From sequence record OR538032.1: a stretch of DNA of 64,000 nt; one strand, given 5' to 3'. Positions 7,240 to 49,437 of the stretch are shown one piece after another. Position 1 is the first letter of the stretch. Each line of letters begins with the position of its first letter. Made by a program: the position numbers and the translations under genes. Below the pieces are notes generated by a model that was not told the DNA's origin, searched no databases, and saw nothing but the letters and a program-made list of their open reading frames with translations.

Positions 7240-7881
7240 ATGGAATTACAACTCTTAATTGAAGACTGGGGCGTATCGAGCTATGCAACTGCTGAGACTG
7301 GCGAAAAGCCGCTTGTTGAAGCGAAAATGCCCGCTGAAAAAGGCGGCGACTTGTACATTGAGGGTATTTTCATGCAATCGAATGTCGTGAACCGTAATGG
7401 TCGCAGATATCCGAAAAAAGTCATGGAAAATGCCGTATCTAAATACATTCAAGAGCAAGTCAAGACGAATCAAGCGTTGGGCGAGCTTAATCACCCTAGC
7501 CGTTCGAACGTCGATCCTGCTGAAGCTGCAATTCGTATCACTGAGTTGTGGTGGGATGGCGATAACGTAATGGGAAAAGCAATCGTACTAAATACTCCGA
7601 AGGGACAAATCGTACGCGGTCTAATCGAAGGCGGTTGGGTTCCGGGCGTAAGTTCACGAGGTCTTGGTTCAGTTAAGCAAGTTGACGGGATCAACGAAGT
7701 ACAAGACTTTCGTCTTACAGTTGGTGTAGATGTAGTGTGGGGTCCGAGTGCGCCTGCTGCATACGTTAAGCCAGTAACTGAGTCAAATGAAGCTGCTAAA
7801 TCAGTAAAAACAGAAGAAATTACAGAAAGTAATGACGCTGAGTTTGCGAAACTAGCGGAAACGTTAAAAACTCTCTTATAA
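7240..7881 (+). CDS. gp21: prohead protease
   Basis: LYIEGIFMQ, NRNGRRYP, GELNHP, GVSSRGLGS, DVVWGPSAPAA. Confidence 0.97.
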   Translation: MELQLLIEDWGVSSYATAETGEKPLVEAKMPAEKGGDLYIEGIFMQSNVVNRNGRRYPKKVMENAVSKYIQEQVKTNQALGELNHPSRSNVDPAEAAIRITELWWDGDNVMGKAIVLNTPKGQIVRGLIEGGWVPGVSSRGLGSVKQVDGINEVQDFRLTVGVDVVWGPSAPAAYVKPVTESNEAAKSVKTEEITESNDAEFAKLAETLKTLL

Positions 7882-11947: not shown

Positions 11948-13402
11948 ATGTCAAGTATTAATATACCTGGATTCGGTTACTCGGCTGTACCTGAATCGCC
12001 AAACGATGGGCAGCTATACGGTAGACGAAATGCCACATGGGAGTTAATTGCTCTCTCAGACGGTGTGTTAGAAGCACCCGCAGACGGACAAGAATATGTT
12101 CGAAAAGATTTTCAATGGGTTTTGCCAACTTACCCAACTTATACCGCAAGTAATATTAGCCTAACGTCGTCGTTATTCGCGTCAACGAATGTTCACGATG
12201 CGCTTGAGGAACTTTACTACGAAAACCCACTCAATGTCGTACTTGTTCGCAGCGAAGATGATCTGCCAGCCCCACAAGTGATCAATGGTGTGTTGACGCA
12301 CAAACTCGAAGAAAAGGAATATGTCATTGATGGTAATGTTACGATTGCAAATTCACTAGGGTTTCCGGGAGCGGGGATTAGTGCAACGATTAAAGCGATA
12401 AACCGTTCGGTGTTGACTTATACTGGAACCGATGCCATGTTCTATGATCTAGGGGCACAAGGAAATATTGAAATCGCTGGTCAGACTGAGTTCCAAGCCC
12501 CGAATGCCGACATGTTCAATTTGATTTCTGGTGCGGGTGGTTTCTCATTTCAGTCACGGTATGCTGACCGATTCAATAACTGTGACCGTCTAGGTGAAGT
12601 TTACTGCGGCGGATTATCTACGATTGTGTTCAATAACGGTACATTCAGAAACTTCAATCAAGGGCTTGTTGTTCACGACCCGGGCTTTTTTGAAGTAAAC
12701 ACGTTCTTCGTATTCGGTAATAACCAAGCTGGATGCACATATTTCACAGTACAAGGGACATCATCAACTGGCTCGATTAACATCGACACAGTGACATGTT
12801 CTATCGGGACAAATGAGACAATTTTCAATTTCAACCCGAATATTCAGGCAACGATTGATACGATCAACGTTCGAAACTGTAGTCTTCGTGGACCACTGAA
12901 CGGTAAGCTATTTGCACCGGGAAGCTTGACACCGCGTGATTTCAAATTTGAAAGTCTTGGTAACACTCTTATCCCAAATACGGTTCAGGGTGGTTTATTG
13001 TCACTATCTGGCAATGCGACCCCAACTGTAGTCGGTGCAGTAAATACTCCAACACTTGCGGCAGGTACATGGGTTGTTCAAGAAACATCACATTTCATAG
13101 GTTCAACGGGAGGTCGTTTGACTTCTCAAGTAATCAGAGATATTTCGACTAGTATTGATGCGTCAATTACGGTTGAGCCATCATCGGGTCAGGGTATTGT
13201 AATTCGCGCATACTTAGCTAAAAACGGCGTTCCAATTGCCGCTAGTGCGAAAACAACGACGGCTGATAGTGGCAGAGAGGGCTTCTTGTCATTGACATGG
13301 CAAATGGACATATCTAAAGACGATTATATCGAGTTATTTGTTGAAAACCGTTCTGGTTCAACGTCGATCATTGTCACAGATGCTGCGTTACGCATCCCGT
13401 AA
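11948..13402 (+). CDS. putative trimeric fiber/decoration protein (2x foldon, beta-rich middle, C1q/BclA-like tip)
   Basis: VPESPNDGQLYGRRNATW and LEAPADGQEYVRKDFQW resemble the fibritin foldon; STNVHDALEEL fiber motif; C-terminal YLAKNG ... DDYIELFVEN jelly-roll pattern. Confidence 0.7.
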   Translation: MSSINIPGFGYSAVPESPNDGQLYGRRNATWELIALSDGVLEAPADGQEYVRKDFQWVLPTYPTYTASNISLTSSLFASTNVHDALEELYYENPLNVVLVRSEDDLPAPQVINGVLTHKLEEKEYVIDGNVTIANSLGFPGAGISATIKAINRSVLTYTGTDAMFYDLGAQGNIEIAGQTEFQAPNADMFNLISGAGGFSFQSRYADRFNNCDRLGEVYCGGLSTIVFNNGTFRNFNQGLVVHDPGFFEVNTFFVFGNNQAGCTYFTVQGTSSTGSINIDTVTCSIGTNETIFNFNPNIQATIDTINVRNCSLRGPLNGKLFAPGSLTPRDFKFESLGNTLIPNTVQGGLLSLSGNATPTVVGAVNTPTLAAGTWVVQETSHFIGSTGGRLTSQVIRDISTSIDASITVEPSSGQGIVIRAYLAKNGVPIAASAKTTTADSGREGFLSLTWQMDISKDDYIELFVENRSGSTSIIVTDAALRIP

Positions 13403-13438: not shown

Positions 13439-13930
13439 ATGAGTCAATTGAAAACACACGCAGATTCACTAACTAAAGCCGAACTAGATGAGTTTGCACA
13501 AGAATATTACGGCATCGAGCTTGATCGTCGTAAATCAAAAGGCGCTATGACTAAAGCTCTTCTTGAAGGCGCTGAAGGTAAAACTCCGCTGAAGCAACTT
13601 CCATGGGAAGAACTTCTTCTTGAAGAAACACCTGAGCCAGTCGTAGAGACGAAAGTCAAAGAAGAATCCGAAGCTGTTAAAGTTGAGCTTCCGAAAGATG
13701 ATTCTTTCGAGCCTCTACCACTACCTTTCAAACGCGGTCATGAACGTTTCATGATTGCGTCTGATTCTGCCGTTGAATCGGCAAAGGGAATTGTTGCAGG
13801 TAAAGCCTCGCTTGACGATGTGCTTGCATCAGATCTTCGCGTAGTTAAATCAATCTTGCATTATGTCGAGCAAGACGGCAAGGTGCTAGTGCGTGAAACT
13901 CGCAATAGTCAATTCATCACAATTAAATAG
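13439..13930 (+). CDS. inh: inhibitor of prohead protease, copy 1
   Basis: N-terminal ELDEFAQEYYGIELDRRKSK and C-terminal KSILHYVEQDGKVLVRETRNSQFITIK match T4 Inh; AATAAATA at 13401-13408 upstream. Confidence 0.85.
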   Translation: MSQLKTHADSLTKAELDEFAQEYYGIELDRRKSKGAMTKALLEGAEGKTPLKQLPWEELLLEETPEPVVETKVKEESEAVKVELPKDDSFEPLPLPFKRGHERFMIASDSAVESAKGIVAGKASLDDVLASDLRVVKSILHYVEQDGKVLVRETRNSQFITIK

Positions 13931-13938
13931 GAACTGAA

Positions 13939-14271
13939 ATGACAACACCAATCAATACTGATATGAACCTTGCAGTCACTCTTGATGATTTGACTGTAGC
14001 AGCGGCAATCGCTGCGAAAAGTGGGTACGATGATGTGACAACTTCCGCGCTAAATCACGCGGGTGAGTCATACATCATTGTAGACAAGCAAACTTATGAA
14101 GAGCTTAAAGCTGCGATTGAGACTGCTAGTCCGCTGAGTTCAATTACTGGTCTTTCTCAAGAGTGCATTGACATTCTAGCAGGAGCAGTTGATTCAGCAA
14201 CGACACTTTGCCGCGAACACACTAACAGTCGATTCTTCCGAATCGCATGGACTGTTACAGTAACGCCATAA
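13939..14271 (+). CDS. hypothetical protein
   Basis: 110-aa ORF with AGGA RBS, followed by a terminator. Confidence 0.75.
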   Translation: MTTPINTDMNLAVTLDDLTVAAAIAAKSGYDDVTTSALNHAGESYIIVDKQTYEELKAAIETASPLSSITGLSQECIDILAGAVDSATTLCREHTNSRFFRIAWTVTVTP

Positions 14272-14274
14272 TAG

Positions 14275-14301
14275 AAAAGCCCGCATTTAGCGGGCTTTTT
14301 T
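14275..14301. terminator. bidirectional terminator
   Basis: AAAAGCCCGC-ATTTA-GCGGGCTTTTTT between convergent genes. Confidence 0.88.
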
Positions 14302-14329
14302 GTGTCTACGAGACGCGCTGTAAGCGATT

Positions 14330-15514
14330 CTAAGCGACGAACGCTACGCGCTGTACGATTGTCTGTTTTTCGTCGCGAAACTCGTCGTGAGCTTTTACAG
14401 TCGCTTTTACAGTTACTGTAGTGCCGTTCTCAATCGTTTCGCCGTCTTTGTCACGTAGGCGAGTTGAGCCAAACCACACGATTAGGTTGTTTTGTCCGTC
14501 GCGGAAATGATGAATGAACGTGTCGCCATAGTAGCCTTCAGATACGATGACTTTTTCAAGTGTCACATTGAAGTTTTCACGTTTTTTGATAGTACCGACG
14601 TGCTCAGATTCTGGTAACTCTGCTTTACGTTCAGCTTCGCGTTTAGCTAGAATCTCACGCTCTTTTGCTTTGTTAAAAGCCAAGATAGCTGCTGCAATGT
14701 AACCAGTTTGCTTGTACTCGATGAATGGAGCAGCACATGACGCGATAACATTGTGCATGAAATCGTTCGTCGCTTCTTGAGTTGCAACCCATTCTAAGAT
14801 CTCTTTTGCTTGCTCTTCACACTTATCGTAATCGTATTCAGCAAGCATTGCATCACGCTCTTCACGCAGTGCTGGTGAACCAACATTAATCATGTCGATA
14901 ACCCACTGACGAGTCACGCCACCACCATGGTAACAGCCTTTGTGCTTAACATACATAGCAGCCCATGTAACAATCTGAAGTGCGTTGTATGAGATTTTAC
15001 GAGAACCACCACCCCATGACTCTTCATCGCCGAAATCAGCGATTGCAGTGTAGAACGTAGCTAGTGAGTCGATGGATTTAGTTGGTAGGTAGTATTTCAA
15101 GCATGAACCACCAACGCGCATTTCTTCTTTCGTCTCTTCATTTTGAATGACGTAAGTTACATTACGCTGACGCTTAGAGTTGCAGTGATCGCAAGTTGTG
15201 TCACCTAGAAGATGACGATGATTAGTCTCGTTGTTAGAGCGAACAAGATTTGTTGCGTGGTCAAGTTGAGTCAAGAAAGACCAACCTTTAGTTGACGGGT
15301 ATTCACCGCGAATAGTAACATCAACGTAATATTCACGATATTTTTGATGATTGATGATAATGATTTCTGAGTATACTTCACCGAACTCAAATGTGATTTC
15401 AGCAACACCAAGACGTTTTGCAATCTTGTTAGTAGATGCAACACGCGCTTCGAACTCGCTCATGTAGATTGATTTGATTGTGTAAGTGTTTTCGAATTTG
15501 TTTAGTGAAGTCAT
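14330..15514 (-). CDS. hypothetical protein with CxxC...C motif and C-terminal OB-fold-like domain
   Basis: CDHC ... VGGSCL; C-terminal EHVGTIKKRE ... VKATVKAHDEFRDEKQTIVQRV. Confidence 0.8.
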   Translation of the reverse strand: MTSLNKFENTYTIKSIYMSEFEARVASTNKIAKRLGVAEITFEFGEVYSEIIIINHQKYREYYVDVTIRGEYPSTKGWSFLTQLDHATNLVRSNNETNHRHLLGDTTCDHCNSKRQRNVTYVIQNEETKEEMRVGGSCLKYYLPTKSIDSLATFYTAIADFGDEESWGGGSRKISYNALQIVTWAAMYVKHKGCYHGGGVTRQWVIDMINVGSPALREERDAMLAEYDYDKCEEQAKEILEWVATQEATNDFMHNVIASCAAPFIEYKQTGYIAAAILAFNKAKEREILAKREAERKAELPESEHVGTIKKRENFNVTLEKVIVSEGYYGDTFIHHFRDGQNNLIVWFGSTRLRDKDGETIENGTTVTVKATVKAHDEFRDEKQTIVQRVAFVA

Positions 15515-15556
15515 AATATTCTCTCTTGTTGTGGACGATTCGTTTCGTTGATAGAG

Positions 15557-15585
15557 ATATTACGGCTTTTTGGTATAGTCGTCAA
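15557..15585 (-). promoter_or_regulatory. sigma70-type early promoter
   Basis: TTGACG-N17-TAATAT on the minus strand upstream of the ORF starting at 15514. Confidence 0.8.
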
Positions 15586-15622
15586 CCATTAGATACAAAA
15601 AAAGCGCAAAAATGCGCTTTTT

Positions 15623-16585
15623 TTATTTGTCGAGCATGAATATTGTCACATCATCTTGAGATTCAAACGATGGTTTGTAACCGTATTGCGGTCCAAGACG
15701 TTTGAATAAACGCTTGTACAGACTGATTCGTTTCTCGTTTCCATCTTTGATTGATGTTGCAATTGTCTCACAGTTGTATTTCTTAGCAAAGTTCACTGTT
15801 TCATTGACTACCGTTGCAAATACTTGCATTGGGTTTTCAGAAGCAGTCAGATCATTAGTCCAGCCACTCTCACCGCGAACTTGAAAATGCACCTCAACAG
15901 CTTGTACAAACTCAGGCGGATTGAAATTGAAAATCTCATCATTACCACCCCAATCAATGCCTCGCGGTATTAGAATGACGCGATAAACTTGTTTACCTAT
16001 CTGAAATAGACCCTCGATTGGTTTCTTGTCACCCACGAGAACGTCGCCTTTCGGGTACATGACTTTCGCGGGCTTGTCAAGTGATTCCGTCAAATTAACC
16101 GAAGACAGCCACTCGCGCCATGTCTTTTTATTTCCGATTTTCGCAAACGGAATATCGTCATGGTCTAGCCACTGTGCCGAGCGGTCATACGACTGAGAAG
16201 TATCAAATCCACGGTAATCATCGCCAACCCATAGCCATTTATGATGCCAGATTTGATTGACTTGACGTGGCTTAGAAACAGCACCGTCTTTGTAAGTGAT
16301 CATCATACCCGCGGCTGGTTCCTGTACAGTGTCAAATTCAACTGAGTCATAGAACGCAACGCCACCTTTTTTATAGTCAATTCGGACAATGTTCGGTGTG
16401 AATTGCGGATTTGCTATTGATACTTGAGTACGAGCATCAGCAACCATTTGCTTGAACTCGTCAGGAACATAGTCAACGTGAACATATAATGAACCGCCAA
16501 TGTCTTTACCAACGCCCCATTTGCTGCGTTTTACTGCACTACCTTTTCGGGTTTTTAATGTAGCGCGTTCAAAAATTATGCTCAT
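15623..16585 (-). CDS. two-domain hypothetical protein, putatively capsid-packaged
   Basis: 320-aa ORF in the operon after TCTAAATA; internal LTE-SLDKP junction; C-domain resembles ORF 60736. Confidence 0.8.
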   Translation of the reverse strand: MSIIFERATLKTRKGSAVKRSKWGVGKDIGGSLYVHVDYVPDEFKQMVADARTQVSIANPQFTPNIVRIDYKKGGVAFYDSVEFDTVQEPAAGMMITYKDGAVSKPRQVNQIWHHKWLWVGDDYRGFDTSQSYDRSAQWLDHDDIPFAKIGNKKTWREWLSSVNLTESLDKPAKVMYPKGDVLVGDKKPIEGLFQIGKQVYRVILIPRGIDWGGNDEIFNFNPPEFVQAVEVHFQVRGESGWTNDLTASENPMQVFATVVNETVNFAKKYNCETIATSIKDGNEKRISLYKRLFKRLGPQYGYKPSFESQDDVTIFMLDK

Positions 16586-16587
16586 TA

Positions 16588-17181
16588 TTACCTCGTTGCT
16601 GCGTTTGTGATATTTCTGATCATACGCACTGCGAATTGAGTGTCGCCTGTCATGGCTGCTGACGCCGCCTTATCGACGTAAAACGTGCTATCTTCGATCA
16701 TGTTCAAGTGATGGTAGATTTCACGAAAATCATGGCGGTCGAACTCTTTAGTGGTGAAACGAAGCGCGCCTGCTTTCTTGTCATCGTCGTGAACACGTTT
16801 GTATTCATCAATGACTCGAATCATTTCACTAGCGTATTTCTTCATTTCCATGTTATCGAGCTTCAAACGTTTTGCTGCTTGAATTACCTCGTCACGAGGA
16901 CGCTCAAGTTCAATCGCATCTTTAAGAATGTTCAGGCTGTGAATGGTATTCACTGCTGCCTTTTCCATTTGTAATTTGTGATCTTCAAGCGTTCGATTAT
17001 GCTTTCTCAACTCACCAGTTGCGGTAGCACTTGCAATCAAGCCAGCAAAAACTCCCCAGAACCCGCCTTTACGCTGCAAGCGTTTCTTAACTTCGCCTTT
17101 CGAACCTGCTGTAATTGCTTGAAATTGAGCCCATTTGCCGCTTTTTCTTGCTTTATCCATTTCTGTTAAAAATTCAATCAT
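16588..17181 (-). CDS. hypothetical protein with CTS-like N-terminus
   Basis: MIEFLTE start; hydrophobic GGFWGVFAGLIASATATG; GGGG RBS. Confidence 0.8.
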   Translation of the reverse strand: MIEFLTEMDKARKSGKWAQFQAITAGSKGEVKKRLQRKGGFWGVFAGLIASATATGELRKHNRTLEDHKLQMEKAAVNTIHSLNILKDAIELERPRDEVIQAAKRLKLDNMEMKKYASEMIRVIDEYKRVHDDDKKAGALRFTTKEFDRHDFREIYHHLNMIEDSTFYVDKAASAAMTGDTQFAVRMIRNITNAATR

Positions 17182-17206
17182 AGTTTTAACCCCTTATTGT
17201 TTACTG

Positions 17207-17214
17207 TATTTAGA
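17207..17214 (-). promoter_or_regulatory. late promoter variant TCTAAATA
   Basis: TATTTAGA on + strand, just downstream of a terminator and 26 nt upstream of the ORF starting at 17181. Confidence 0.65.
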
Positions 17215-17222
17215 CGTAAACG

Positions 17223-17249
17223 AAAAAAGGGCGACCGAAGTCACCCTTT
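17223..17249 (-). terminator. intrinsic terminator
   Basis: minus strand AAAGGGTGAC-TTCG-GTCGCCCTTTTTT. Confidence 0.88.
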
Positions 17250-17263
17250 AACAGTTGGTTAAA

Positions 17264-17890
17264 TTAACCGTAGATTGCTTTGATGTTATCAAAGAACGAA
17301 GAAGATTTATTTACCTTCGCGATTACGTAGGTAGCATTCATCCGAACCATGTTCGATACGTTGATTTTTTCAAGCTCTTCTTTATCGAGATTTGCATCAG
17401 TGACAAGTTTTAGAATGTCGCGTGCATTGTCTCGCAATGCAATTGATGTCAGATAGCGAATTTGCTGCTTTGCTTCAAGTGATTTGAATGCATCAATCGC
17501 ATCTTGACCAGCAACTGCAACTGAAAGACCCAGCCCGCGATTAAGTGCGCGAGTCAAAAGCTTCTCCATGCCTTCGATTGGCTTGCGTGGCGTCGCTCGT
17601 TTTGGGATGTCGATAGCTAGACGACCTTTGTTTTTCAGCGAGTAAACGTGAACTTCACGAACGCCGTACTTCTCAAATCGTGTTACGATGATCTCATCAG
17701 AGTTCTGTACGTTATCTTGTACACGTCGTCGTAGAGTTTCGTTGTACTCGCCGCCATTTAGTGCATAGACAAGTTCAGCAACGGTTAGATCACGATGTGA
17801 AAGTAGCTCGATAATCGCAGGGCGAAAGTTTTTGCTGCTAACTTTGTCATTTGAAGCAAGTGCTTTGCGTACGATTTCAACGTTTTTCAT
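17264..17890 (-). CDS. hypothetical protein, possible N-terminal winged HTH
   Basis: IIELLSHRDLTVAELVYAL ... REVHVYSLK pattern; GAGAG RBS. Confidence 0.75.
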   Translation of the reverse strand: MKNVEIVRKALASNDKVSSKNFRPAIIELLSHRDLTVAELVYALNGGEYNETLRRRVQDNVQNSDEIIVTRFEKYGVREVHVYSLKNKGRLAIDIPKRATPRKPIEGMEKLLTRALNRGLGLSVAVAGQDAIDAFKSLEAKQQIRYLTSIALRDNARDILKLVTDANLDKEELEKINVSNMVRMNATYVIAKVNKSSSFFDNIKAIYG

Positions 17891-17906
17891 AATATATTTC
17901 TCTCAA

Positions 17907-18182
17907 TTAAATTTCTTTCTCAACGGGAACTTGAATTTCATCAAATTGCGTATCGTGGTATTGCTCATACGCTTCGTGAAAGCTATCAAGTTCATCGTCA
18001 ACTATAATCTGTTCGCCGGTCTCGAAAACATACATGATGCTATCGTATAAACCAGTGGCAGTATTGTACATTGGTTCAGTTGTGAATCTCACACCGCACG
18101 GCGTGAAAAGCTCAATTCTGACTTCAGGGACTGGGACTTGCTCTGCATTGTGTACTGCAAAGGCTTGTTCTAATCTAGTCAT
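17907..18182 (-). CDS. hypothetical protein (acidic)
   Basis: ATG at 18182 after GAGAG (track starts at 18215). Confidence 0.7.
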   Translation of the reverse strand: MTRLEQAFAVHNAEQVPVPEVRIELFTPCGVRFTTEPMYNTATGLYDSIMYVFETGEQIIVDDELDSFHEAYEQYHDTQFDEIQVPVEKEI

Positions 18183-18243
18183 AATGTGCTCTCTGTATTG
18201 TCTCAACGAAAACAAGTTTAGGTCAAGACAATACTAATGTCAA

Positions 18244-18732
18244 TTACTTTTTGCGCCATTTTGCAAGTTTTTCATCGTATTCACTGTGCTTCCACAAATC
18301 AAACACGATAGTACCGCTCTGGAACCACCACACAAGTGAGATTGTATCATTCAGCTTAGGATCTTTAGGGTTCTTTCCTAAGTAAAGCTCAGTACTCGGG
18401 TGCGAGTGGTAGATTGCTTTTTTGACAGCGAACTTATATCCGCCTTCTGGCATACCAATTTCTTTCGGTGGGTAGATATTACCCAGATACGCTACTTGAT
18501 ATACTGTGTTTTTGAACACAACACGAGCCGAGTCAATATTGAAAAGCAAGTTTTGATACTTAGCAGCATTCGGGGCAATCTTCCATTTATTCTTAGGCTT
18601 GGTTTCGAGTAGTTTATCAATCTCGGGTTCTGGTATCAATTTACCGAGATTGTGATTTCCCCATTCTTCCTCAAGAGAAAGACTAATATGAATGCCGTAA
18701 AGCGTGTTTTCATATTCGTTAAATCGAAGCAT
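18244..18732 (-). CDS. hypothetical protein with CTS-like N-terminus
   Basis: MLRFNEYE start; in the late operon downstream of inh2. Confidence 0.75.
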   Translation of the reverse strand: MLRFNEYENTLYGIHISLSLEEEWGNHNLGKLIPEPEIDKLLETKPKNKWKIAPNAAKYQNLLFNIDSARVVFKNTVYQVAYLGNIYPPKEIGMPEGGYKFAVKKAIYHSHPSTELYLGKNPKDPKLNDTISLVWWFQSGTIVFDLWKHSEYDEKLAKWRKK

Positions 18733-18736
18733 GTTG

Positions 18737-19255
18737 TTACCTCAGATAAGTGAAGCTATTTGAATTGCGTTCATGAACTAACAATTCACCGCGAAGCTTA
18801 ACCCAATGTTCAATTGTCTTTAGATCGTGCGAGTCTCGACGACCGATGTGCCAATCATGAATGATTTCAGCCGATAACGGTTGATATAATTCATCACCGC
18901 GACGATATGTAGGCATCCATTTAGGCTTGAATTCATCTTCAATATCAATTTCGACCTTAATCGCATCAACTGGATCGACTAGAACTACGTCAACACGTTC
19001 TAAATGCTCGTGAGAATCAACGTCAACGCATTCAGCGTCTTTAGCATCTGATTCATCGACTAAATCACAACGAGTCTCAGAATCAATTACAGCGCATTCT
19101 AGCGGTACTTCGGTTTGAGCTACGATTTCATGAGCGATAAGCTCTTCGATCATTTTGCTCTTTGTAAGGGATTTGTCAAGCTCGATGTCATAATGTTTCA
19201 ACGCGAATTCAGCGACCCCTCTCTTAGTCTGTTTCTTTAGATATTCAGTAATCAT
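18737..19255 (-). CDS. inh: inhibitor of prohead protease, copy 2
   Basis: AEFALKHYDIELDKSLTKSKMIEEL and LKTIEHWVKLRGELLVHERNSNSFTYLR; AAGGA RBS before ATG 19255; adjacent to uvsW as in T4. Confidence 0.8.
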   Translation of the reverse strand: MITEYLKKQTKRGVAEFALKHYDIELDKSLTKSKMIEELIAHEIVAQTEVPLECAVIDSETRCDLVDESDAKDAECVDVDSHEHLERVDVVLVDPVDAIKVEIDIEDEFKPKWMPTYRRGDELYQPLSAEIIHDWHIGRRDSHDLKTIEHWVKLRGELLVHERNSNSFTYLR

Positions 19256-19263
19256 ATTATTCC

Positions 19264-19470
19264 TTAGCACGTAATAGTGACCCATTCGTTTTGGTTCAAA
19301 TCAAAGAATGTCAGAGTATCGACACAACGTTCATTCTTCCTCATTTCTTCGCGATTCTTTTCAAGAACAGGCAAATAATGCTTGCACAATGTGCCGTGAT
19401 ATTGGCACCCGTCGCGTTCTAATTTAAGACATCCTTGCGTCATACAGGACATCATTTCTTCTCGTGTCAT
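19264..19470 (-). CDS. small Sm/WYL_2-like hypothetical protein
   Basis: GTL...P ... DTLTFFDLNQNEW pattern recalled from WYL_2 (DUF2693)-like phage proteins. Confidence 0.6.
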   Translation of the reverse strand: MTREEMMSCMTQGCLKLERDGCQYHGTLCKHYLPVLEKNREEMRKNERCVDTLTFFDLNQNEWVTITC

Positions 19471-19483
19471 GATTTTAGACCTC

Positions 19484-19491
19484 TATAAATA
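19484..19491 (+). promoter_or_regulatory. late promoter TATAAATA for uvsW
   Basis: exact consensus. Confidence 0.85.
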
Positions 19492-19501
19492 CAGTTATAC
19501 A

Positions 19502-19509
19502 TATTTAGA
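19502..19509 (-). promoter_or_regulatory. late promoter variant TCTAAATA for the 19470/inh2 operon
   Basis: TATTTAGA on + strand. Confidence 0.65.
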
Positions 19510-19533
19510 CAAAACTCGCATAGAGAGAAAAAC

Positions 19534-21057
19534 ATGACAGATATTAAAATTGAGTACTTCGATGAGAGTTATGCGAGAGTCGTAGCCGAGCCAAGCATTA
19601 CTCATGAAATGATTGATTACTTTTCATTTCTAACTGACGGGTACAAATTCAACCCTAAATTTAAAATGGGCATATGGGATGGCAAGATTCGACTAATGAC
19701 GTATCAAGGTCTATTGCCATACGGTCTAGTCGGTCAAGCTAAAGCGTTTGCATCAAACATGATGTACACGATTGAAACTGATCCACTACTTGATCCGATT
19801 GAGAAAATTTCTCGTGAAGATTTTGAAGCATGGGTTGCTTCTCTTGATATTTACGGTGGCAGCAATAAAATTAGCCCGTACTGGTATCAAATGGATTCAG
19901 TATTTCACGGTATTAACAATCAGCACATCCTTTTGAATCTACCAACATCGGCGGGTAAATCGCTGATTCAGTCACTTTTGACACGTTGGTTTTTAGAAAA
20001 TCACGAAGCTCAGAAAGTGTTGATTATCGTCCCAACGACTGCACTAGTTCAGCAAATGCGTGACGACTTTTTAGACTATCGCTTGTTTGAACACGGTGAC
20101 ATATATCAAATTCGAGGTGGCGTAGATAGAGACGCAATCGGCGACTGCCGTATTGTTGTTTCAACATGGCAATCGGCTGTTAAGCAAGATAAAGCATGGT
20201 TCGATCAGTTCGGTATGCTTCTAGTCGATGAATGTCACTTAGCAACGGGTAAGTCGCTTGACGGCATCATCAAAAAAATGACCAGTTGTGAATACAAAAT
20301 AGGTCTTACTGGTTCACTTAGAGACGGTAAAGCTAATATTCTACAGTACGTGGGTTCATTTGGTGATATTTTCAGACCTGTATCGACTGCACAGCTAATG
20401 GAAGAAGGGCAAGTAACTGATCTGAAGATCAATTGCTTGATGCTTGAATATCCTCAGCCACTACGTGATGAAATGAAAGGCAGTTCATATCAAGAAGAAA
20501 TGAAATTCATTCTTGAGAACAAACAGCGAAATCGTTACCTGATTAAGCTTGCTCATCATCTGAGTGCTAAGAAAGGCGAGAACACGCTATTACTGTTCAA
20601 GAACATTAAACATGGTAAATTGCTCTACGAAGCATTGAAGAAAGTCTACGATCCTGAGAAAGTGTTCTACGTATCAGGTGAAACTAAGACTGACGACCGT
20701 ACGCATGTTAAGAAAATTGCAGAAGATATTGACGGGGCAGTTATTGTCGCATCATACGGTGTATTCTCGACTGGTATCAGTATCAAGAAACTACACAACG
20801 TAATTTTCGCACACCCGACAAAGAGTAAGATCATCAACTTACAGTCTATTGGTCGTATTCTACGTAAGCACGGTTCGAAAGTTACTGCGAAGCTGTTTGA
20901 CATTATCGACAACTTGGCGATCAAGCCGAAACGTAAGAATGCTAAGAAGCCGTATACACATGTCAATTATACTATGAAGCATGGGATGCAGCGTATTGAG
21001 CTTTACAACCAAGAAGAGTTCAAGTACGCAGTCAAAAAAGTTGACCTTGCTGCATAA
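19534..21057 (+). CDS. uvsW: UvsW DNA helicase
   Basis: LPTSAGKS, LVDECH, GLTGS, LQSIGRILR SF2 motifs. Confidence 0.97.
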   Translation: MTDIKIEYFDESYARVVAEPSITHEMIDYFSFLTDGYKFNPKFKMGIWDGKIRLMTYQGLLPYGLVGQAKAFASNMMYTIETDPLLDPIEKISREDFEAWVASLDIYGGSNKISPYWYQMDSVFHGINNQHILLNLPTSAGKSLIQSLLTRWFLENHEAQKVLIIVPTTALVQQMRDDFLDYRLFEHGDIYQIRGGVDRDAIGDCRIVVSTWQSAVKQDKAWFDQFGMLLVDECHLATGKSLDGIIKKMTSCEYKIGLTGSLRDGKANILQYVGSFGDIFRPVSTAQLMEEGQVTDLKINCLMLEYPQPLRDEMKGSSYQEEMKFILENKQRNRYLIKLAHHLSAKKGENTLLLFKNIKHGKLLYEALKKVYDPEKVFYVSGETKTDDRTHVKKIAEDIDGAVIVASYGVFSTGISIKKLHNVIFAHPTKSKIINLQSIGRILRKHGSKVTAKLFDIIDNLAIKPKRKNAKKPYTHVNYTMKHGMQRIELYNQEEFKYAVKKVDLAA

Positions 21058-49140: not shown

Positions 49141-49437
49141 ATGACAAATCGTTATACATTCGAAGAAATTCTTGGTGAAGACTACGAAAACAAAGACTAT
49201 CTTGACTTTCTGCTATATGGCGATGGTGACTTCTCGGGCGTAAACTTCATTGAACAAGATGGTGGTGGCGAAGGTGGTTCTGAATACTGCTACACGATTC
49301 TTGAAAAAGACGGTCGTTACTTCAAGACTGAATACAGTTACTACAGCTACCACGGTTACGACAACTACGGTGATTCGTTCGTTGAAGTTTACCCAAAGCA
49401 AGTTACGATCATCCAATACGTGAGCACTCCTCAGTAA
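49141..49437 (+). CDS. acidic Tyr/Gly-rich hypothetical protein
   Basis: 98 aa; GGGEGGSEY ... YYSYHGY. Confidence 0.75.
   Translation: MTNRYTFEEILGEDYENKDYLDFLLYGDGDFSGVNFIEQDGGGEGGSEYCYTILEKDGRYFKTEYSYYSYHGYDNYGDSFVEVYPKQVTIIQYVSTPQ

Follow-up and report, generated by a model that had tools for sequence, protein, structure and literature searches.

A KVP40-type vibriophage gene with a TIGR04096-related domain that may encode a head-packed, injected effector

The 64,000-nucleotide stretch of sequence record OR538032.1 that was analyzed here (the window) belongs to a schizoT4 vibriophage of the KVP40 type: between positions 14000 and 18000 its identity is 100% with Vibrio phage PG216 and 98.6% with KVP40. 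On its minus strand, at 15623..16585, it encodes a protein of 320 amino acids (aa), the target of this study. The KVP40 homolog, KVP40.0371 (locus L001, 7731-8693), is annotated in GenBank as 'hypothetical protein', and phrog_16075, which matches the target over its full length, has no function assigned in PHROG. Profile comparisons showed that the N-terminal 163 aa belong to a large unannotated domain family, which includes the non-catalytic domain of TIGR04096, the family of putative methyltransferases associated with DNA phosphorothioation (PT). In addition, comparison with another T4-like phage, in which two separate genes lie side by side, showed that these are fused in the KVP40 gene. 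The encoded protein is probably packed into the phage head and injected. The gene has the following parts:

15623..16585, minus strand: target gene, 320 aa, homolog of KVP40.0371, phrog_16075
16097..16585, minus strand: N-terminal domain (N-domain, aa 1-163), homologous to the non-catalytic domain of TIGR04096
16031..16096, minus strand: inter-domain linker (aa 164-185), a putative relic of a capsid-targeting sequence (CTS), kept in 9/9 homologs, including those with a swapped C-terminal domain
15626..16030, minus strand: C-terminal domain (C-domain, aa 186-320), predicted alpha/beta fold resembling GNAT, antizyme and the 'DNase I-subdomain' of RNase E

The initial annotation had noticed a likeness to the repeated TIGR04096 domain within 16106-16546, which corresponds to aa 14-160 of the target. 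The motifs on which it was based are all present in the open reading frame (ORF), namely GVGKDIGGSLYVH (aa 24-36), NIVRID (aa 65-70), FYDSVEFDTVQEP (aa 78-90), and NQIWHHKWLWVGDDY (aa 110-124). The GenBank entry of KVP40.0371 carries the note 'match to PF05480', which is not reproduced with the current Pfam and looks like a legacy false positive. The single match of the target to the current Pfam is sub-threshold (DUF6934, E 0.035).

The N-terminal domain and its relatives

An alignment of thirteen close homologs was used to delimit the N-terminal module. Residues 1-165 are separable: they occur alone in proteins of 176-180 aa and elsewhere they precede unrelated C-terminal parts. In vibriophages of the nt-1/ValKK3 types, identity falls to 23-24% in the C-terminal half but is still 93-96% in the N-domain.

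The relationship to TIGR04096 is invisible to direct scans. An hmmscan against NCBIfam gave no match of the target to TIGR04096 or any other model at E<=1, and the TIGR04096 hidden Markov model (HMM) did not match the nearest phage record at E<=10. Membership in TIGR04096 is decided by a whole-protein score with a curated cut-off of 150 bits, which the target does not reach. Profile methods revealed the homology from both sides. A profile of the N-domain retrieved 1012 representative proteins at E<=1e-3, 810 of them at <=1e-10. The TIGR04096 model matched 18 of 55 mid-size relatives of the N-domain at E<=0.01, exactly on the common region; in one of them (P0071) aa 251-390 were aligned to model positions 316-460 (E 2.9e-6). 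An HMM built from six phage-type sequences matched 115 of 120 TIGR04096-family proteins (E<1e-3), and a bona fide member (L003, 408 bits) carries the motif series of the N-domain. A deep profile-profile alignment of the N-domain and the TIGR04096 domain with hhalign extended over 150 columns (probability 99.0%, E 3.3e-18). Hence, the resemblance described in the initial annotation represents real homology.

The non-catalytic domain comprises about 150 aa (TIGR04096 model positions ~316-474), and in long forms it is found at the N-terminus as well. The full architecture of TIGR04096 is methylase, HNH_repeat, helical linker, and a domain of the N-domain type. In 60 of 87 long members (~660-770 aa, mostly cyanobacterial) copies at both ends flank the methylase, while short members contain one C-terminal copy, so that the description as a 'repeated' domain is correct for the long members. 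The initial annotation had also been right in stating that the phage protein lacks a motif for S-adenosylmethionine (SAM): neither Pfam nor NCBIfam detected a SAM methylase domain in the target, and an HMM of the methylase of TIGR04096 members matched 12 of 160 relatives of the N-domain and 0 vibriophage proteins. Therefore, the phage protein is not a member of TIGR04096; it shares only the domain.

The shared domain is characterized by the motifs VGK..LY.H, N(I/V)(V/I)K, PDFD...P, I.H.K...V..DY, and IG....W. The phage protein differs from TIGR04096 proteins in the absence of the SAM methylase, of the HNH_repeat segment, of PT genes in the neighbourhood, and of a score with the family HMM. Specific to the phage branch are an additional hairpin at the N-terminus (T.KGS.IKR), E89 at a position that is occupied by His in the bacterial copies, and HHKW instead of HRKE. 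Furthermore, the phage-type domain is basic (median isoelectric point, pI, 8.7), in contrast to the acidic bacterial copies (median pI 6.3).

The PT association of TIGR04096 was inspected at six bacterial loci. Four of them contain, within 3.5 kb, genes for a DUF4007 protein, a BrxC-like ATPase of about 1100 aa, and a PAPS reductase (plus a cysteine desulfurase), and at three of these four the TIGR04096 gene is divergently adjacent to the Ssp-type PT genes. One of the six loci also adjoins McrBC, one adjoins a type I restriction-modification (R-M) system, and one has no notable neighbours. DUF4007, BrxC, and PAPS reductase are homologs of SspB, SspC, and SspD (PMC12839542). Therefore, the PT association of TIGR04096 is real and of the Ssp/BREX-4 type. 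No DNA phosphorothioation genes are located near the phage locus.

The N-domain family extends well beyond these bacterial proteins. Isolated phages with the domain, as retrieved with tblastn, comprise 51 records of Vibrio schizoT4 phages only, and the rest of the family is metagenomic; a scan of genome contigs with the strict motifs yielded one cellular locus only. There is no Pfam model for the family. The top 160 relatives comprise 54 standalone domains, 64 mid-size fusions, and 42 giant proteins (1.2-6.4 kaa). The most common direct neighbour domain is Methyltransf_23, which is present in 12 of 55 mid-size proteins and abuts the N-domain in both orders. Further partners in these 55 proteins are a CCA-adding enzyme/poly(A) polymerase together with HD (twice), NFACT-R (twice), Tpt1/KptA-like, YafQ, HAD_SAK_2, ART-PolyVal, ParB_N, NlpC/P60, GNAT, and DUF5662. 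P0015 combines DUF5662 with the N-domain in one chain, and a T4-like contig has a DUF5662 gene not far from one for the N-domain (L017, 1395-1889). GNAT genes are located near N-domain genes in two contigs (L015 and L017). DUF5662 and GNAT may be further partners of the module.

Among the giant proteins, P0028 (4757 aa) has the architecture of DarB-like polyvalent proteins, with an Eco57I-type methylase, a SNF2 helicase, ART-PolyVal, Methyltransf_23 followed by the N-domain, and LPD38. In P0023 the N-domain lies beside a C5 DNA methylase. Judging from these domain architectures, the N-domain was shown to be a recurrent bead of giant DarB-like phage polyvalent proteins. Polyvalent proteins of the phage type are packaged and injected, and LPD38 is exclusive to this type (Iyer et al., 2017, PMC5512222). 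The occurrence of the domain in such proteins (P0028, P0023, and the 42 giants) is in line with the proposal of the initial annotation that the target is a packaged protein. The likeness to polyvalent proteins, of which DarB of phage P1 is the archetype, includes the solo N-domains among phage late genes, as is known for other LPD domains (PMC5512222). As differences, the N-domain is absent from the LPD families of Pfam and is not mentioned in PMC5512222, and the KVP40 protein has two domains only and no metallopeptidase, so its processing would be performed by a prohead protease of the T4 type.

Capsid-targeting sequences and the origin of the fused gene

The CTS of T4 (MKTYQEFIAE) is cleaved a single time by the head-maturation protease gp21, and its fusion to a protein, whichever it is, is enough for packaging (PMC8442874). 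The phage studied here encodes the head proteins gp67, gp68, gp21, and gp22. The following features are relevant for packaging:

16082-16093, minus strand: candidate gp21 site in the linker, L165-T-E167 with the cut before S168, aligned to the CTS cleavage Glu of P0282
16565..16576, minus strand: first [LI]xE site, I4-F-E6 with the cut before R7, at the end of a short N-terminal leader, kept in 9/9 vibriophage homologs
7240..7881, plus strand: gene of the gp21 head-maturation protease, from the annotation of KVP40.0361 mapped onto the window

The two [LI]xE sites, E6 and E167, are the only ones in the target, and both are invariant in nine vibriophage homologs. The suggestion that a gp21 site separates the two domains thus gained support, as the linker motif L-T/S-E before S/A is conserved in 9/9 vibriophage homologs.

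The origin of the linker became apparent from a metagenomic contig of a T4-like phage (L014, with gp32 and gp59 as neighbours). There, the module is split into three overlapping genes. The first encodes a protein of 211 aa that is homologous to the product of ORF197, the conserved gene upstream of the target (32% identity, E 5e-29). The second encodes a standalone N-domain (62% identity), and the third encodes P0282, a protein of 185 aa that is homologous to the KVP40 C-domain (E 7e-5). Therefore, the KVP40 gene unites two partner genes in a fusion. The N-terminal sequences are MLSYNEFIAE in the 185-aa protein and MKTFKEYALTE in the 211-aa protein; with a BLOSUM score against the published T4 CTS as an unbiased measure of likeness, values of 30 and 19 were obtained for the leaders of the split-module partners (P0281 and P0282). 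In a MAFFT alignment the CTS cleavage Glu of P0282 coincides with E167 in the KVP40 linker (SVNLTE, cut, SLD), and the linkers of P0003 and P0002 retain a longer CTS-like stretch. The C-domain, which is swap-prone among vibriophages, matches phrog_6387 (E 1.8e-9).

A CTS of the T4 type directly precedes the N-domain in 5 of 90 proteins (P0154, P0077, P0130, P0105, and P0109; scores 17-24), one of which is encoded in a clearly T4-like contig. Scores of at least 17 were reached by 0 of 120 bacterial proteins and by 1 of 74 ORFs of the window. Leaders ending in [LI]xE were found in 24 of 58 proteins with an N-terminal N-domain, compared to an expectation of 5.3 +/- 1.9 from control windows; the 24 proteins include nine close vibriophage kin. 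Because the capsid-targeting tag of T4 is present on relatives from other T4-like phages, the target protein is probably packed into the head and injected.

This part of the initial annotation, that the protein is packaged and ejected, is thus given comparative support by the tags of the split-gene partners and of some N-domain homologs; the N-terminus of the KVP40 protein itself, however, is not tag-like. It has a score of -2 against the T4 CTS, which is rank 54 among the 74 ORFs of the window, and the leader comprises only 6 aa. Two further points weigh against packaging: 29% of shuffled sequences contain one [LI]xE[AGS] site by chance, and a virion proteome of a KVP40-type phage was not found in the literature searched. 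The idea that the ORFs of the leftward gene cluster at 14330-19470 all have T4-CTS-like leaders was rejected because there is no enrichment (ranks 54/74 for the target and 50/74 for ORF197). The most T4-CTS-like N-terminus in the window, MTNRYTFEEILGE with a score of 20, belongs to a 98-aa ORF at 49141-49437 (plus strand), the product of which may be another capsid-targeted protein.

The same points would fit a late protein that is not packaged, remains in the cytoplasm, and exerts its effect inside the cell that makes it, perhaps on progeny DNA or a late-acting abortive-infection system, with the site in the linker as a remnant of the fusion. The minimal leaders of many standalone homologs, which lack a protease site, point in the same direction. 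In contrast, neither the linker site nor the E6 site varies, although the vibriophage homologs are only 23-75% identical elsewhere, near-perfect T4 capsid-targeting sequences are present on the split-gene partners, and the domain recurs in phage-type polyvalent proteins. Weighing both sides, a purely cytoplasmic role seems rather unlikely to us.

The best-known packaged proteins of this kind are IPI, IPII, IPIII, and Alt of T4. The target shares with them the position as a small, putatively late gene in the hyperplastic region of a T4-like phage with gp21, the conserved [LI]xE sites, and homologs and split-module partners with leaders close to the T4 CTS. It differs from them in that there is no sequence similarity beyond the leader, in that the KVP40 leader is truncated to 6 aa and the main candidate cleavage site is internal, between two domains, and in that its packaging is a prediction.

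Transcription signals and neighbouring genes

The gene cluster that contains the target runs leftward from 19470 to 14330. ORF197 precedes the target in the same orientation and its stop codon ends one base before the ATG of the target. The features around the two genes are:

16588..17181, minus strand: ORF197, conserved upstream partner gene, phrog_16422, function unassigned
17207..17214, minus strand: late-promoter-like motif TCTAAATA, 25 nucleotides (nt) upstream of the ATG of ORF197, putative promoter
17226..17249, minus strand: hairpin resembling an intrinsic terminator, at the end of the upstream transcription unit, with a 10-bp stem and then a T-run
14330-15514, minus strand: downstream gene, 394 aa, phrog_2319, co-oriented with the target

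The hairpin is the only terminator-like site on 14000-19600. A late promoter had been postulated for the gene. The canonical motif TATAAATA is absent from the minus strand near the target, and what can be retained is the variant TCTAAATA upstream of the preceding gene ORF197. This variant is present in eight copies in the window (4457, 6386, 7438, 8567, 17207, 19502, 29050, and 40582), compared to 2.55 expected copies, and 0 of 100 shuffles reached eight. Four of the eight copies are intergenic and are located 14-33 nt before an ATG, which is the position of the canonical TATAAATA. C at position -12 has been reported as a late-promoter variant in phage Aeh1 (PMC2988020). The distribution in the window suggests that TCTAAATA is a C(-12) variant of the late promoter in KVP40-type phages. 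It speaks against this part of the argument that the motif is merely a variant and intragenic in four of its eight copies, and that three RNA runs contained 0 phage reads.

Several observations were made on the surroundings of the target. The phrog_2319 gene encodes a protein with a Cys-rich middle and a C-terminal region that is common to four other PHROGs. The leftward cluster is flanked by two paralogs of the prohead-protease inhibitor gene inh, at 13439-13930 (plus strand) and 18737-19285 (minus strand), which match phrog_8608 with E values of 1e-77 and 1e-66. The gap downstream of the target (15611-15642) is variable: in a related strain (run X1) 137 nt replace 30 nt, and KVP40 has about 107 additional bases and an additional ORF of 120 nt (KVP40.0370). 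At the position of hoc, 11948-13402 (plus strand), there is a fibre-like gene with a weak match to Fibritin_C (E 0.0016) and a match to a tail-fibre PHROG.

Possible functions of the two domains

The model of the N-domain predicted by AlphaFold2 from an alignment of 54 sequences is of high quality (pLDDT 96, pTM 0.89). The fold has a beta-hairpin at the N-terminus and a helical tail, and its mixed sheet packs against a single long helix. No relative with a solved structure was retrieved: the best Foldseek match in the PDB had an E value of 0.34, a VIA alignment against 48,161 chains gave a best Z of only 3.8, and searches of PDB sequences with the single sequence or with a profile were empty. 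The BFVD contained one homolog and nothing else, and the ESM Atlas yielded nothing usable for the N-domain. Residues G26, K27, Y34, H36, F84, P90, H114, and K116 are near-invariant in the phage and the bacterial branches, and D85 and Y124 are also conserved across both. In long bacterial proteins (e.g., P0256 and P0212) the N-terminal copy keeps K27, Y34, and R115, while they are partly lost in the second, C-terminal copy, which suggests that the long TIGR04096 proteins have one active and one degenerate copy. The pattern of conserved residues is compatible with a pocket for a specific ligand or with an active site.

We give an even chance to the reading that the product of the gene is an effector with two modules, of the kind represented by the internal head proteins of T4 and by polyvalent proteins, and that it counters host defence. 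ORF197 and the target would form an operon that is transcribed late from TCTAAATA, and the target protein would enter the prohead. The protease gp21 would then cut at E167 in the relic-CTS linker, and perhaps also at E6, and the two halves would be injected along with the DNA. The Lys/His pocket of the N-domain (K27, H36, H114, and K116) would bind a nucleic-acid or defence-system ligand, the same ligand that the bacterial cousins of the domain would present to their methylase. This binding would interfere with host defence, and the best candidates are PT systems of the Ssp/BREX-4 type or R-M systems. A functional precedent is IPI* of T4, an injected inhibitor of the type IV restriction enzyme GmrSD.

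On the functional side, four observations count against such an effector. In the structure searches the N-domain resembled none of the folds known to bind DNA or to read PT, its bacterial copies are acidic, the strong conservation of His, Lys, and Asp could mean that the domain is an enzyme and not a binder, and the fusions to the CCA-adding enzyme, Tpt1-like, NFACT-R, YafQ, and HAD_SAK_2 point to RNA.

This last observation is the starting point of an explanation in which the ligand or substrate of the N-domain is tRNA or another RNA, to which the domain brings the RNase E- or GNAT-like C-domain of the KVP40 protein, either for tRNA repair or modification or for an attack on host RNA; in that case the TIGR04096 methylase would methylate RNA, and its gene would only happen to lie beside PT genes. 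The fusion partners include an RNase toxin (YafQ) and the 'Swiss-army-knife RNA repair' domain HAD_SAK_2. The phage-type domain is basic, and KVP40 has 30 tRNAs (PMC3468402). In addition, the best structural matches of the C-domain are structures of the RNase E catalytic subdomain, with Z scores of 8.4-9.4 (best 6x2d, Z 9.4, rmsd 2.8 A over 102 aa in VIA), followed by GNATs (Z 7-8.7, 3shp 8.7) and antizyme (8.0). The C-domain shares with these folds a beta-beta-beta-alpha-beta-alpha-beta-beta core, and GNAT genes lie near target homologs in L015 and L017, as mentioned above. It differs from them by the lack of an N-terminal GNAT arm and by an identity of only 6-13%; the target has no Pfam GNAT match, a pyrophosphate loop for coenzyme A was not recognized in the C-domain by eye, and the ESM Atlas contained only unnamed small viral proteins as its relatives. 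Moreover, the two types of vibriophage C-domains do not share the acidic residues that would be catalytic if the site were RNase E-like. The family context of the N-domain also argues against RNA as the common substrate: its most common direct neighbour is the methylase, the TIGR04096 methylase comes with a homing-endonuclease-associated repeat and is encoded near DNA-PT, type I R-M, or McrBC genes, and other giant hosts of the N-domain carry DNA methylases and a SNF2 helicase. Beads of polyvalent proteins are functionally unrelated, so that fusion there implies no common substrate (PMC5512222). A function directed at RNA is therefore considered unlikely.

An enzymatic function of the N-domain itself, for example as a phosphoesterase or transferase using H36, H114, K27, and K116, is in our view improbable to a similar degree. 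The near-invariance of these four residues, D85, and Y124 in both branches would be expected of an enzyme, and so would their selective decay in the second TIGR04096 copy, as in duplicated enzymes with one regulatory copy; in addition, the 54 standalone proteins among the top 160 relatives are in accord with this reading. However, neither the fold nor the motifs match known enzyme classes, and the arrangement with one copy on each side of the methylase suits a role in substrate recognition. Readings of the conserved residues as a PLD/HKD-like (HxK...D) or a PD-(D/E)xK nuclease were dropped because there is no fold match, and the likeness to PLD/HKD nucleases is not supported by the predicted fold.

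Within the two-module effector reading, the initial annotation had proposed the more specific role of a DNA-binding or decoy module that may counter Dnd- or Ssp-type restriction, and this is a hypothesis that stands beside the RNA-directed and the enzymatic readings. The N-domain would be a piece of the Ssp apparatus that reads a DNA mark or a partner protein, and a free copy that is packed into the head and injected would act as a decoy or competitor and blind PT-dependent defence. We regard this version as quite doubtful. Ssp systems were first characterized in Vibrio (PMC9646914, PMC8092258). If the decoy idea were true, the decoy would be the first means known by which a phage counters Ssp-type systems, TIGR04096 proteins would have a first function, and the study of counter-defence against Ssp systems would be opened.

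Taken together, the finding joins an unexplained accessory gene of Ssp-type PT systems, an undescribed bead of giant injected phage proteins, and a small gene that T4-like vibriophages carry in their hyperplastic head region, a link that was not found elsewhere in the literature searched. With about 1000 clusters at 50% identity and neither a Pfam model nor a structural relative, the N-domain family is a good target for structural and functional studies. The putative relic CTS inside a fused gene would illustrate, as a clean case from nature, the way in which phages of the T4 type acquire injected cargo and put it together. A leader that resembles the T4 CTS and ends in [LI]xE may serve as a simple sequence handle for finding more injected effectors in metagenomic T4-like phages.

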